In this document: piece after piece, positions 7,189-37,177 of the stretch
Layout: every line of letters begins with the position of its first letter
Position numbering within the stretch: the first letter of the stretch is position 1
Assembly (NCBI GenBank): GCA_038496445.1
Contig: JALMLS010000093.1
Coordinates: forward strand, 620,001 to 684,000
Source of the DNA: Trichosphaerium sp. ATCC 40318
Lineage: Eukaryota > Protista > Tubulinea
Reading direction: 5' to 3'
Length of the DNA: 64,000 bases
Notes under the pieces: model-generated
Seen by the model: the letters and a program-made list of their open reading frames with translations, nothing else
Told to the model about the DNA's origin: nothing
Database searches by the model: none
Program-made: the position numbers and the translations under genes

Positions 7189-7877
7189 TTAACAAAAAAG
7201 CGTGTTCTCTGTTAGTAACATACAATCTGCTATCCATCCGTTATATCCCGCTCTCTTTGAGTTTGACATAGATACAATGACATCGTTGACACAGTGACAT
7301 GTAACAGTTAATTGGCCACTATAATCCCAACGTTTTTGCTCTCCTTCTCTCTTATCATACACCCAATTTGATAGAACTCTTAATTGGCCATTATCATACC
7401 ACTTCTTTGCTTCTCCTTCTTGTTTACCATTGAAAATATAAAATACCTCTTCTAGTTGACCATTACTATGCCATCTCTTACACTTTCCTTCAATTATATT
7501 ATCTACAAAATAACACAACTCTTTCAATTGGCCACTTTCATACCACGTCTTTGACTCTCCATTATACTTACCATGTGCCCAAAATACTTGAGCTGCAATT
7601 TTATATGATACTCTGTAATATGTATTCCATTTACCATGCTTTCTTAGTCCGTTGTCAAACCTTCCTGAGGTTCTAGCTGTGTATTTCGAAAGCAATGGCC
7701 ATTTTATATAAGCCTCAATGTCTGTATCAGCAATATAAAGATGTAACTCGATTGGAAGTTCTAGAAGGTACGTTGTGCATTGCGTTATGGGTAGGGAAGC
7801 TAACTATTTCAGATATTATTAACGATGGAGGCATATTGGACTTTTAAGAGTAGTACCTTGAGTTTTGTTGCCATCAT
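7189..7877 (-). CDS. F-box-like plus MORN-variant (YwqK-like) repeat protein, one 5' intron
   Basis: ATG at 7877: MMATKLK, GT-AG intron, then ...YLLELPIELHLYIADTDIEAYIKW (F-box-like) in frame with ORF 7189-7695, which carries repeats GESKTWYESGQLKE, GKCKRWHSNGQLEE, GEAKKWYDNGQLRV. Confidence 0.75.
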
Positions 7878-30555: not shown

Positions 30556-32089
30556 CTATGAGTTTGTTTCAGGGACCTTGTCAACATCCATTGGGGTAGC
30601 GTCTGCAGTTGGCTGCACTGTACTGCCTTCATCGCTTTTATTTTCTTCCTTTTCCTCTTTTTTCGCTTCTGGTTCGCTTGATTCCTTTGGCAGAGGCGTG
30701 AACCAATTAAGGAGAGTACTTCCAGGTTTCATGGTCTTGTTAGGTCGTTTTTTAACGCTCTTCTTTACAGCAGGTGTCACTGATGAAGATTTTTTTGGAG
30801 AGCAAGGTTTTGATGATTTTTTCTTTGGAGAAGTATTTTCCGTTGTATTCTTTTCTGATGGTTGTGTTATTTTACGTTTCTTGCGTGCAGGAGCTGCATA
30901 AGCTGGATCGTCGAATGAAAACCGTGTGGCAGTCTAAGTAAGTGTTATTTAGGGTAATAAAAAAAAACATCCAAAAAAAAAAATCAAGAAGAAAAGAGTC
31001 GTACCACACTCTTTCTTTTATTCAGGTGACTTAGTGATTGCTTATTTAGCACTTCTAACTCATATGCACTTAATTGGCGAAGGAATCCATCATTTATAGC
31101 TATCGTGTCGCCTAGAAAGAGTTTTAAAAAAAAAAAGATTTTTGCAAGGTTTTGAATAAAACTACCTGTTTTCTCCTTTAGCAGGTTTATAGCGTTTGCA
31201 AGTGATAAATCGTGATGCTTCATAGCGTATGCAGCAAGAGTAGATACTGATCTGCTCTGTCCTTTTCTACAATGGACAAATATGACATTTTCTTGTTCGA
31301 CATGTTTTTGAATAAATGTACAAGCGTTGCCGAAGTGTTGCTTCAAGTCTTCATCAGGAGAATCATCAACGCTTATACGCATGTAATCAATTGTGGTCAT
31401 GGCTTGATGATAATGCTTTATATCAGCGGTAACGTTAAGGACGGCTTTAACGTTTTTTTTCGCCAAGTTCGTATAATCAAGAACAGCTGTTTTAAAAGGT
31501 TTAGTAAACTGCGCTATTACGCTAATCCACACCGGTAGCAGTGGTGCGCAATCACTGCACACGTCTTGATTTTGTTATTTGCATGTATTCTAACGTACCT
31601 TGGCGTCCTGAGAGGTACACTTTTGGAAATATTTCGATGCCTTCAAAAAGTCTTTTTCCAGCAATTTCTTTTCTCTAACGAAGGCGTGTTAACAACTTTT
31701 AATGTGTACTGTCACGTGCTTGACGTAGTTTTTCTCTAAATTGTAGTTCTATTTTACGTTTTTGTCTCCTTTTCTACAACGAGTATGAGATGTTGACTTG
31801 TGGTTAAACGAAAACTTTTTCGTGAACATTTTTTTGTAAAATCTTACTTCGGCGTTTTGCTTTTTCTCCTCTTCAGTTAGTGGTCTTGACGGCTTTCGCA
31901 CTGTTTTAGAGTTAATAGTTAATTTTTCTGCGCTACAGTACCTTTAGGTGGCTTTGGAAGTTTATGATCTGCAGGAAATTCAAATGACTTTGTAATGGAG
32001 CGTGTACGAGCGCCAGCAGTGGCAGTATTCCAATAAGCTTGAGGGAATAGTTTAGTAACTTGTTTGATGTCAGTTGAATGTACCTCCAT
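30556..32089 (-). CDS. Dual-specificity protein phosphatase with Lys/Ser-rich C-terminal tail
   Basis: EIFPKVYLSG, AVLNVT, ISVDDSPDEDL, catalytic VHCRKGQSRS, INDGFLRQL; multi-exon. Confidence 0.9.
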
Positions 32090-34052: not shown

Positions 34053-37000
34053 ATGCGTTGTGCTGTTTTTCTATTGATAGCAATAGCGCTAGTCGCCTAT
34101 GTCAACGGTGCTTCAAGACCAACAGCGTCTGTACCTAACTGTGATGCTGCTTCTCCTGACTGGGGATGTCCTCCTGGTGATTACAGAGTATTCGGAAATG
34201 GTAGAGTCGACAGACTTACCTGTAGAAAGAGACCAGAACCTCGCATGTCATGGGCAACAAAGGTAGTTCGCTCAAACGCTTATACAGTATGGGCTGGAAA
34301 AGAAGATAACAAGCTCAGACAGTACGTACCCGAGACAGTTATGGATATCTCTATTCGGGTTAACAATTATGCTTTCAAATATCGCGGTATTCTCATATAC
34401 GCTGAAGATGCCCAAAAGAACAGAGTCGGAGAGTGGCTTCTACCAAACGAAAAAAATCGTATGTAATCTTTTTATTCAAGTTCAATTTTTCTTTGTTCTC
34501 CTATTGACTTGTTCTGATTGTTTATACTAGCGCTCTTTCAACTTCCTTGGCCTAACAACCATGCTTGCCGACAGAGTTTAACCCACAACACCGCTGAAGT
34601 AAAACCTTTGAAGTCTACTTGGAAATGGAAGGCTCCAAAACGTGGCACTGGAACTGTTACTTTCCACGCTTTGATCAAAGAAGGTGATGCCAATACTGGT
34701 GCTTTCTACTGGCCAAACGGAAATGCTGGACCTCTTAAACTCACTCAATCCGCAAAGAACAAGCCAGTGCAAACATGGTATCAGAGCAAGGTACGTTCTC
34801 CTTTTCGTCCATTTTTTTTCTTTCAAAAAACCATTTAAGAGTTTTACTGACTTTGTATTATTTAGCGTTCACAATCTTGTACCGAAAGGTGTAGAGAAGT
34901 CAATGCAAACCTAAAGTGTGATCGTGTCCACATGGAACGTGTTAACAGCCCAGCAAGAATTGAGCAGCTCATCCTACCACAAGGATTCGCTTGCAAACTT
35001 CCATACGTTAGTGGATGCAGCAATCGTGGACCTACAATGGGCACTGATGGCTTATGCTACTACGATGATTCCAGATGCGCAGCACAAGGACGTAACAGAC
35101 AACCTGTAACTTGTGATTCTAAGTCAGGTGATAGTAGAGTTGGGTACGGAGAACTCGTTTATCTTTTTTTTTTTCATGTTGAAGATTTTGTTCCTTACGC
35201 TTTTCCTAGACTCAGAATGTGCAAATGTCTTCGTACCACTCTTCCTCCAGCCAACCCTGGTAGAACTGTTGTTGCTGCCAGAGGTGCAACCTCAACTGCC
35301 ACGAAATCGACGGCATCTTTCTTATTCATGGCTCTCGCTGTCCTTGGTTTGACAGTGCGTTCTTCAGGGAAGATGACAACTTCAGTTGTCTTGGCTCTCT
35401 TCCTCATCGCTTTGGTTTCCTTCCCTACCACTCAAGCTCACAACTGGCAAAATGGAATCGGTAGAAGTGCAGATATTGCTAGTACCCAAACACCATGCCC
35501 ATCGAGAGTACAAGCAGGCCCACATGTTCAAGTTGGACCTAACCAGAAGTTTGAAATCGAGTGGGCTGTAGGTCATACTCAACCTTCTTACTACGTCATT
35601 GTCAAGTCAACAAACGAAGACAGACTCAAAGAAGTTTCTTTTGACTCTTTGGAGACATACCTCAGAGAAGCACCAAACGCTCGTTGTCAGAACTTACCTG
35701 TGTACCACAGACGTTTCAGAGCTCGTGGAGCTGACTTCAACCCTCATTCACAATTCTACAGCGGCGAGATACCACGTAACTCTCCTAACTTCATACCAAG
35801 ACCTGCAGCTTTCGGATTATGGGCAGATGATGCCAAGTTATTCGGATACAAGGACAACCTCGAAGTCAGAAATTATTGCGAATACCAAAACAACAAAATG
35901 CCATTTATTGAAGGTGTTTTCAAGTTCGAACATCACGCACACAGACCGCAAGATGCTGATATGGTCAGACTAGCTATTCCTGGCAGAGGTGGATTTGGTG
36001 CTTACACTGTTCAATGGTTATGGAGAGGATATCGCGATTGCGTTGATGTTGATTACAGACCTAACAGAGTAAACAACATTTACGGACGTCCAAATCCTGA
36101 TGGCGGTTACACGTGCGTCTTTTATTTCTTCACCAAAATTTTCTTTGCTCTTTTTTTTTCTCACTTGTATGAATGTTCATTGACTTTATACTTAGACGTG
36201 TTGATCACTGTTACTTTCCAGATCCTAGAGAAGTTTTTGGTACAATTATTTATCTCGAGATTTGTCCACTGACTTTGTTCTTTCGAATAGATTGCTTCAG
36301 AGTTTTCAATGACCTTACCACGTGTGAAAGACAGTGCGATGTCAGAAACGGAAATTGCGCTGGATTTACTGTCATACCGAGAGTACTTAAAGCCAACAGA
36401 TACAACGGACAAGCGAAGCTATTACCTCAAAAGTGCATAGATAATGTCAAAACCAACCAACTCGGAGAACCAGCACAAAATGTTGATGTTTGTATCTTGG
36501 TAAGACCAAGATTTGCTACAGAAACATTTGGTTTTACAGATGTTGTAAAACCCGGAGATCCTGCTTATCAAGCAACTTGTTATCGTAAAGGATCAGGAAG
36601 AATCTTTGATAACTTCACACCACCACCACAACACCAAGACATTGCTTGGAGACACGGAGATGAATGTATTTCTTGCGATTCTGTCAACTTGAACAAAAAC
36701 GTTACACGCATTCCTAAGTGGCCAATGACGAACGACTGTAGGAACTGTGAGTTGGAACCAAAGGGAAATACACCAAGGTTCAATCCTTCATACCTCGCAA
36801 ACAGAAGAAGAAACGTTTTCTGCGATGGATTCAATGGCGGATTCGAGTTCCTTCGAGATGAATCAAACCAGAGACATCACAAATGCGCAGGTGACTCTTT
36901 CAAGACGTGTCACAAGAAGGTATTGATGAGAGGTCGTCCTGCTCCATGGAACGAACGTCTATGGCTTGCTGAATGTGCTGAAGCAGCAAAACGTGATCCA

Positions 37001-37177
37001 CAGTGCTCAAACAAGATTTACACGTTTGATCTTACTTTTCTCAAACACAAAGCACAAACAGCTGTTTCTTGTTATTGTGTTACAACGAGGGCTTGTTGTA
37101 GAGGATGCAGAGCAAGAACACCAAATAACAATCCAGGTCGTTGGAGCACATGGGACCTTGTTCGTGGTACAAGCTAG
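34053..37177 (+). CDS. Secreted/membrane polyprotein: Reeler domain - Cys-rich - TM - internal signal peptide - LPMO-like His-brace domain - PAN/apple-like Cys modules
   Basis: Signal MRCAVFLLIAIALVAYVNG; Reeler motifs YVPET..ISI, YRGILIYAED..RVGEW, LTHN, WKWKAPKRGTGTVTFHALI; hydrophobic pair ASFLFMALAVLGLTV / SVVLALFLIALVSFPTTQA; then H(35439)NW..R..C..G..FEIEWAVGH(35574)..LAIP..YTVQWLWRGY(36030)RDCVDV. Confidence 0.82.

Follow-up and report, generated by a model that had tools for sequence, protein, structure and literature searches.

An internal signal peptide in a protist precursor may expose the N-terminal histidine of a predicted LPMO-like domain

To our knowledge, the catalytic histidine of histidine-brace enzymes must be residue 1, and the domains of lytic polysaccharide monooxygenases (LPMOs) hence always stand first in their proteins. 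The cytochrome domain of cellobiose dehydrogenase (CDH) donates electrons to LPMOs, and proteins of the Reeler-DOMON-cytochrome b561 type are the ferric-chelate reductases FRRS1/SDR2. Internal cleavage by signal peptidase is known from viral glycoprotein polyproteins, which are cut by the enzyme of the host between flavivirus prM/E, hepacivirus/pestivirus E1/E2 and bunyavirus Gn/Gc. The gene described here lies on the + strand, at positions 34053-37177 of a 64-kb stretch of DNA (64,000 nucleotides; positions 620,001 to 684,000 of contig JALMLS010000093.1 of Trichosphaerium sp. ATCC 40318), which we refer to as the window. It has six exons and codes for a 925-aa precursor in which a Reeler-like half and a predicted LPMO-like half are joined by what appears to be a second, internal signal peptide.

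Read from the N-terminus, the precursor consists of a signal peptide, a Reeler-like module, a Cys-rich linker, a Ser/Thr stalk, a hydrophobic segment, the short loop RSSGK, an internal signal peptide, a domain beginning with histidine (the His-1 domain) and a Cys-rich C-terminal region. The first hydrophobic segment, ASFLFMALAVLGLTV (segment 1), is directly preceded by GATSTATKST. At the other end of the junction, the His codon 35439-35441 opens HNWQNGIGR and directly follows T-Q-A, which in silico constitutes a site of the signal-peptidase type (TQA|H). The whole junction is contained within exon 4 (35210-36112), and the window frame holds no in-frame stop between the Reeler half and the His-1 half. 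A previous account of the window, made from its letters alone (the sequence-only reading), had given this frame exactly, letter for letter and within one exon; of the exon that it placed at 35210-36110 the start holds, while the true end is 36112.

Relatives were collected by an exhaustive HMMER search using the second half (window 35373-36110) as the query, which returned 414 proteins at E ≤0.001 and 213 at E ≤1e-10. Most of the 414 relatives are 900-1400 aa long and match the domain at approximately residue 300-600, and the alignments begin within the hydrophobic segment. The order Reeler-(Cys linker)-His domain-(C-terminal region) was found in about 97 of the 199 proteins examined. Junction statistics were determined for family representatives of <50% mutual identity, in which the junction recurs as a Ser/Thr/Gly-rich stretch, two hydrophobic segments parted by a few polar or basic residues, a small-x-small site and HNW, in that order. 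Among the 128 representatives whose alignment extends to the domain start, His was domain position 1 in 127. The -3/-1 rule (A, S or G at -1; A, V, S, T, C or G at -3) was kept at 90/90 internal junctions, against a background of 10% in the same proteins; its -3 part was kept in all 127, and three N-terminal junctions show P or T at -1. Stand-alone paralogs (n = 34) begin with Met and a signal peptide of ~15-35 residues, then HNW, and their N-terminal signal peptides share the same -3/-1 pattern. Two separate hydrophobic segments were present in 78 of 91 internal-domain representatives; segment 1 and the h-region both have a family median of 15 residues, the loop one of 6 and the c-region one of 4. 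The family loops contain 148 K/R versus 25 D/E, with at least one K or R in 71/78, and therefore fit the positive-inside rule for a cytosolic loop. At the level of the sequence, the stop-transfer segment, the positive loop and the internal signal with small -3/-1 residues are all present in the window as well as in the family. This junction pattern is far beyond chance.

The pattern suggests the following route of biogenesis. The N-terminal signal peptide would take the Reeler-like module and the Cys-rich linker co-translationally into the lumen of the endoplasmic reticulum, the 15-residue hydrophobic segment 1 would halt transfer, and the short basic loop would remain cytosolic. The second hydrophobic segment would then restart translocation as an internal signal peptide, and signal peptidase would cut after T-Q-A, making His 35439 residue 1 of a beta-sandwich domain. 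The His-1 domain and the Cys-rich C-terminal region would be freed as a soluble protein, and the Reeler half would stay tethered by its hydrophobic hairpin, possibly to be trimmed later, with both halves made 1:1. We consider it quite probable that a single precursor is processed in this way by signal peptidase at an internal signal peptide. This is the best reading because the layout is conserved, the -3/-1 rule is kept, His occupies +1, stand-alone paralogs exist, fused transcripts are found and no Met is conserved at the junction. The sequence-only reading had proposed such an internal cut exposing a His, and the proposal is supported by ~90 divergent proteins, the -3/-1 rule, the stand-alone HNW paralogs and the basic loop; the check that it suggested, conservation of the A|H junction in homologs, came out in its favour (His 127/128, rule 90/90). 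A few points weigh on the other side. One representative, P0058, is the only one with Asp at domain position 1 (residue 32; SNA|DNWLL), 13 of the 91 internal junctions are without two distinct hydrophobic segments at the thresholds used, and signal-peptide and topology calls were made from hydropathy windows and the -3/-1 rule. P0058 would be a natural variant without the putative histidine brace.

Segment 1 shares features with the signal for a glycosylphosphatidylinositol (GPI) anchor. Family-wide, the 15 residues upstream of it are 20% S, 14% A, 9% G and 9% T, and small residues of the omega-site type with a spacer before a tail of ~15 residues are present in the window (GATSTATKST, then ASFLFMALAVLGLTV). 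However, a GPI signal needs an extreme C-terminal position, and the open reading frame (ORF) runs ~570 residues past segment 1. Since the segment is not C-terminal, GPI anchoring is unsupported for the main ORF and stop-transfer is the better term, so that only the second half of the earlier description, a GPI/stop-transfer-like anchor, is retained.

The coordinates of all features are listed in Table 1. The five introns measure 72, 75, 66, 83 and 51 nt and are all of the form GT...TAG, and the DNA of the locus is eukaryotic, with ~36% G+C and short introns. The 44-nt exon 5 was placed via the homolog motif RIDHCxFPxPR, read in the window as RVDHCYFPDPREVF; earlier joins of exon 4 to exon 6 (acceptors 36222 and 36295; donor 36105) were dropped once this motif had exposed the exon. 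From end to end the 925-aa model aligns collinearly with the 976-aa homolog P0001 (32% identity, E 2e-138); collinearity with P0001 and others extends over 900 residues of the window protein at ~30% identity. Its closest relative in the protein collections is 42% identical. A hydrophobic segment within the first 35 residues was found in 50/71 fused homologs beginning with Met.

Table 1. Features of the gene and of its predicted product (positions in the window).
Feature	Position	Strand	Basis
Coding exons	34053-34458, 34531-34790, 34866-35143, 35210-36112, 36196-36239, 36291-37177	+	Spliced translation
N-terminal signal peptide (putative), MRCAVFLLIAIALVAYVNG	34053-34109	+	Translation
Reeler-like module, exons 1-2, with intron 34459-34530	34110-34790	+	Collinear with homologs; 17/41 N-halves match PF02014
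Cys-rich linker, then Ser/Thr/Ala-rich stalk; exon 3 and start of exon 4, with intron 35144-35209	34866-35312	+	Invariant Cys columns
Hydrophobic segment 1, ASFLFMALAVLGLTV, 15 residues; predicted stop-transfer, GPI-signal-like	35313-35357	+	Hydropathy
Basic loop RSSGK, predicted cytosolic	35358-35372	+	Family loop charge
Internal signal peptide (predicted), MTTSVVLALFLIALVSFPTTQA, 22 residues; T at -3, A at -1	35373-35438	+	-3/-1 rule
His-1 domain, HNW..., predicted LPMO-like beta-sandwich	35439-36112	+	Homolog alignment; AlphaFold2 model
Exon 5, linker motif RVDHCYFPDPREVF	36196-36239	+	Homolog motif RIDHCxFPxPR; frame closed by the splice phases
C-terminal Cys-rich region, possibly PAN/apple-like repeats, plus stop codon	36291-37177	+	Alignment; AlphaFold2 model
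Cryptic donor-like GTGCGT at the end of hydrophobic segment 1	35355-35360	+	Hexamer same as exon-4 donor at 36113

Only 7 ORFs reach 150 aa in the 64-kb window, and with long ORFs this rare the 0.9-kb exons of the gene stand out. Neighbouring ORFs on the - strand encode the catalytic domain of a dual-specificity phosphatase (30984-31562; PF00782, E 3.9e-24) and MORN-repeat variants (7189-7695; PF07661). Rfam and tRNA scans of the window were empty and gave no spliced-leader RNA.

We then come to the nature of the His-1 domain. In an alignment of 106 members, H1, R9, H46 and Y74 are invariant, and N2, W3, P19, Q31, D144, Y149, P155, G187, Y189, W195, G197, Y198, D200 and D203 are near-invariant. 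The AlphaFold2 model is a beta-sandwich with two helices (predicted local distance difference test, pLDDT, 92.7; predicted template modelling score, pTM, 0.90). A Foldseek search of this model against the PDB returned AA10s and one AA13 among the top matches, which comprised 9i1u, 5wsz (probability 0.92), 5ftz, 4oy7, 3uam and 4opb; against viral structures nothing was significant, with fusolin/GP37 among the weak matches. AA9 was the only Pfam family matched by more than two of the 106 members (4/106, best E 0.0046).

The family motifs have an AA10-like look, which was examined against real AA10 sequences. Bacterial AA10 genes were retrieved by a degenerate DNA pattern and yielded 38 non-redundant domains, which were aligned; the three that were checked match PF03067 LPMO_10 at E 1e-46 to 1e-51. 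Comparison of the His-domain profile with these 38 AA10s by hhalign gave a score of 25.1 (P = 0.0035), reached by 0/60 column-shuffled decoys (13.8 +/- 2.6, maximum 22.8), with the reversed profile at 13.9. The relaxed alignment stays collinear from H1 opposite H1 (HNWxSPSRA versus HGYxESPxSRAY) through the C-terminal strands and sets Tyr198 opposite the axial Phe of AA10, and an alternative alignment sets the strand FxxEWxxGH....YFV opposite the second-His strand of AA10, with H46 facing the second His. The alignment produced in global mode was meaningless.

By other measures the likeness to LPMOs is weak. The hhalign probability for AA10 was just 9%, the Foldseek matches to AA10 and AA13 had E values of 0.015-0.07 and template modelling scores of ≤0.37, and no Pfam family matched the His-domain at threshold. 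Searches of PDB sequences with the window domain, the family profile and two 'PPSR'-type members gave two chance matches (E 0.8 and 1.7). Ten 'PPSR'-type members had no Pfam match at E ≤10, and a word-indexed homolog search with the His-domain profile for Pfam-labelled intermediates returned only 2 matches. Weighing both sides, we think that the His-1 domain most likely represents a new copper domain of the histidine-brace type, distantly LPMO-like, in which His1, His46 and Tyr198 are candidate copper ligands. Its identity as an LPMO is only suggestive, and the domain is labelled LPMO-like here and not placed in any AA family. Binding of copper seems to us somewhat probable; oxidation of polysaccharides is conceivable, with the balance tilted against it. 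The LPMO label is accordingly one of the weaker parts of the sequence-only reading, given the lack of a Pfam family, the hhalign P value and the Foldseek E values.

The best-surviving alternative accepts the processing proposed above and takes the His-1 domain for something other than an LPMO, namely a copper- or metal-binding or redox protein that would acquire or reduce metals on the pattern of X325/Bim1 or CopC, together with a reductase-like Reeler/cupredoxin/DOMON half, or else a binding module for something other than metal. The similarity to catalytic LPMOs is indeed marginal, Reeler domains are known in ferric-chelate reductases, the N-halves of relatives carry cupredoxin and DOMON, and no recognised carbohydrate-binding module was found, the C-terminal region giving just non-significant PAN/apple matches. 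In contrast, the AA10 alignment by hhalign runs collinearly, with H1 opposite H1 and Y198 opposite the axial aromatic residue, and lies above all 60 decoys, and AA10 structures recur among the Foldseek matches. This likeness to AA10, in profile and in fold, cannot separate catalysis from mere copper binding, and we regard a non-LPMO function as a serious though doubtful possibility.

What the N-terminal half contributes was approached through the homologs. A Pfam scan of the six window exon pieces gave no match. PF02014 Reeler was matched by 17/41 homologous N-halves at E ≤0.01 (best E 4.3e-11; for P0002 the score was 36.3 bits versus a 21-bit cut-off), and by transitivity through these collinear homologs the N-terminal module of the window protein is classified as a Reeler. 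The Reeler assignment made from the sequence is hence borne out via the homologs and not by the window pieces themselves. The module has a near-invariant Met (93%) and a near-invariant His (98%), at columns M60 and H150 in P0001 numbering, and the window keeps both, in RMSWAT and SLTHNTA. By analogy with DOMON-type cytochromes these residues are candidate haem or metal ligands; they presumably recall the Met/His haem ligation in the CDH cytochrome domain, which we take as a lead only. The Cys-rich linker shows invariant Cys columns in the N-half alignment. The linker (34866-35143; P0012:213-298, P0008:217-313) also matches, below threshold, the last ~85 positions of PF15024 Glyco_transf_18 (GnT-V), and such a sub-threshold C-terminal match was seen in 4/41 N-halves (best E 6.9e-5).

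Longer relatives carry extra N-half modules between the Cys linker and the hydrophobic junction. Cupredoxin was detected above the Pfam threshold in P0204:300-560 (PF02298, 24.2 bits) and P0062:137-490 (PF00127, 33.5 bits), and DOMON below its cut-off in P0024:307-620 (30.1 bits versus 32.7), P0027:368-780 and P0033:300-900; one protein (P0052:332-790) has thrombospondin type 1 repeats and an EGF-like domain. Reeler domains are found in ferric-chelate reductases. The cupredoxin and DOMON insertions, together with the kept Met and His, favour an electron-transfer or metal-handling partner over the microbe-binding one, with prey or cell-wall recognition, that the sequence-only reading had in mind, and they hint that the N-half may serve in the former role. 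The N-terminal half is more likely a redox or binding partner of the predicted His-1 domain. In its fullest form the idea would be that this widespread family of protist proteins consists of polyproteins in which signal peptidase splits a tethered electron-donor module (Reeler-like, with cupredoxin or DOMON added in some members) from the founder of a new LPMO family, whose catalytic His1 would owe its existence to the internal cut, yielding a 1:1 redox pair from one mRNA; as a whole we put this forward tentatively.

The C-terminal region comprises ~300 aa, is Cys-rich and was modelled by AlphaFold2 with a pLDDT of 76.9; a family search with it gave only non-significant apple/PAN/MANEC matches (E 0.45-0.9). 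No hydrophobic segment follows the His-domain in the window protein, nor in 100 of the 119 proteins examined, and the C-terminal half is predicted to be soluble. A late transmembrane segment after the C-terminal region was present in 19/119 relatives (~16%), in which the released half would itself span the membrane as a type I protein with its tail in the cytosol. In one of them, P0016, this segment lies at 1506-1534 and is followed by a WW domain. Many homologs carry an extra Cys-rich tail (DPxC...CCS..C...PPC); the window protein ends without one (stop 37175-37177), and tblastn across the window revealed no exon for it.

If the second hydrophobic segment were left uncleaved, the product would cross the membrane twice as a hairpin, with its two large domains outside the cell and the His internal. 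Adjacent hydrophobic segments with a short basic loop do also resemble a helical hairpin, but a transmembrane segment has no reason to keep small -3/-1 residues in 90/90 junctions or His at +1 in 127/128. The same motif follows the true N-terminal signal peptides of the 34 stand-alone paralogs, and the c-region (median 4) and h-region (median 15) are of the signal-peptide type. An uncleaved hairpin is therefore improbable in our judgement.

Two products could also be made at the level of RNA or translation, by separate transcripts, by internal initiation at ATG 35373 or by use of an alternative donor at 35355. The window ATG coincides with the first codon of the second hydrophobic segment, and segment 1 with its preceding small residues looks GPI-signal-like. 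Moreover, the GTGCGT at 35355 repeats the hexamer of the true donor at 36113, and a splice from 35355 to exon 5 (36196) would result in ...LGLT-TC-stop, a Reeler-only product with a GPI-type C-terminal tail. Such a splice, however, implies an intron of 841 nt, ten times the introns of this gene, and L001, a genomic homolog, lacks the hexamer. Nine matches were obtained in a limited search for stand-alone Reeler proteins ending in a C-terminal GPI tail, none of them such a protein, and Reeler-only proteins with a hydrophobic tail were likewise not found within that search. Met occurs at -32 to -15 in 37% of internal junctions versus 28% expected by composition, and being barely above expectation it marks the window ATG 35373 as incidental. 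The signature of two genes, a stop or a conserved start codon between the halves, is absent in the window and in the homologs examined, and fused ORFs are present in Trinity transcript assemblies of two amoebozoans, Flabellula baltica (P0008) and Rhizamoeba saxonica (P0010). We attach little credence to two separately made products as the explanation of the junction; a Reeler-only isoform via the 35355 donor is possible, and it could coexist with the polyprotein.

That the fusion is an artefact of assembly or gene prediction, or a recent lineage-specific read-through of neighbouring genes, is very unlikely: tandem genes that had lost the stop codon between them would indeed show a GPI-like tail and then a signal peptide, but the same junction occurs in ~90 representatives (<50% identity), among them Amoebozoa transcripts and an independent genomic contig. 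The latter, L001, is a 23-kb eukaryotic metagenome contig on which one uninterrupted ORF of 1.6 kb spans the Reeler half, the junction and the first part of the His-domain. Most of the other fused proteins come from environmental contigs of ~3 kb with one ORF each, and a stand-alone member was found in the acantharean Phyllostaurus siculus. Given the ~90 divergent proteins, the transcripts from named species, the L001 ORF and the collinearity with P0001, the fusion is, as judged from the sequences compared, ancient and maintained, and not an artefact. The view of the sequence-only reading that both halves belong to one precursor likewise agrees with the absence of an in-frame stop, the absence of a conserved internal Met and the fused ORFs in transcript assemblies.

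If signal-peptidase processing of a single precursor is correct, it would constitute a natural way round the His-1 constraint, by which an upstream module can be encoded with the enzyme and delivered 1:1. It would also be a rare case of a cellular polyprotein cut by signal peptidase and would show how constructs could be designed to express LPMOs as C-terminal fusion partners. The family itself would add to the LPMO-like proteins a new and structurally divergent group, drawn from little-studied phagotrophic protists (Amoebozoa, Rhizaria and many environmental lineages), and its architecture would suggest a built-in electron donor, a long-standing question for non-fungal LPMOs. No description of the family or of the architecture was found in the full-text collection searched, the coverage of which omits most subscription journals.

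Compared with the AA10 (and related AA15) LPMOs, the family is alike in having His as the predicted residue 1 right after a signal-peptidase site, in the beta-sandwich fold predicted for it and in three motifs: an N-terminal H-x-aromatic...P-x-SR (HNWxNSPSRA in the family, HGYxESPxSRAY in AA10s), a second invariant His in a W/F...H....Y-F/Y-V/I strand, and a C-terminal Y-I-V-x-W...Y-x-x-C/I-x-D-V whose aromatic residue aligns with the axial Phe of AA10. It is unlike AA10 in the position of the second His (46, versus ~87 in AA10), which is followed in the family by a long helical/loop insertion, and in residues 2-3, which are Asn-Trp instead of Gly-Tyr. Sequence and fold matches are not significant (no Pfam family, Foldseek E ≥0.015, hhalign probability 9%). 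Finally, the family domain is usually internal in its precursor, whereas known LPMO domains come first after the sole signal peptide. The LPMO-like copper binders of the X325/Bim1 type, compared by description, share the N-terminal His and the LPMO-like beta-sandwich, are likewise membrane-associated and may handle copper instead of acting as catalysts. X325 proteins, however, have a C-terminal GPI anchor of their own and a single signal peptide, while here the anchor-like segment belongs to the Reeler half and the half with the His-domain is predicted to be soluble.

For the N-terminal half, the redox systems of CDH and FRRS1/SDR2 resemble the present architecture in that a Reeler or DOMON-type beta-sandwich is joined with a redox metal site, a putative one here, and in that the Reeler half of relatives gains cupredoxin or DOMON. 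They differ from it in that no cytochrome b561 or flavin domain is present here, and the putative partners would come from one precursor and then be separated. Insect immune proteins of the Noduler type share the Pfam Reeler domain and a secreted or surface location, but they are small, single-domain and microbe-binding, and the domain context differs here. The closest parallel to the junction is provided by the viral glycoprotein polyproteins, which have the same succession of a stop-transfer segment, a short cytosolic loop and an internal signal with a -3/-1 site, and in which the hairpin is kept by the upstream product and the products of one ORF are made 1:1. Unlike these, the present proteins form a cellular family of free-living protists, and the cut appears to create His1 for a metal site and not just to separate envelope proteins. 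The mechanism is thus one known from viral glycoprotein polyproteins, and its use to create an N-terminal His in a cellular family appears to be new.

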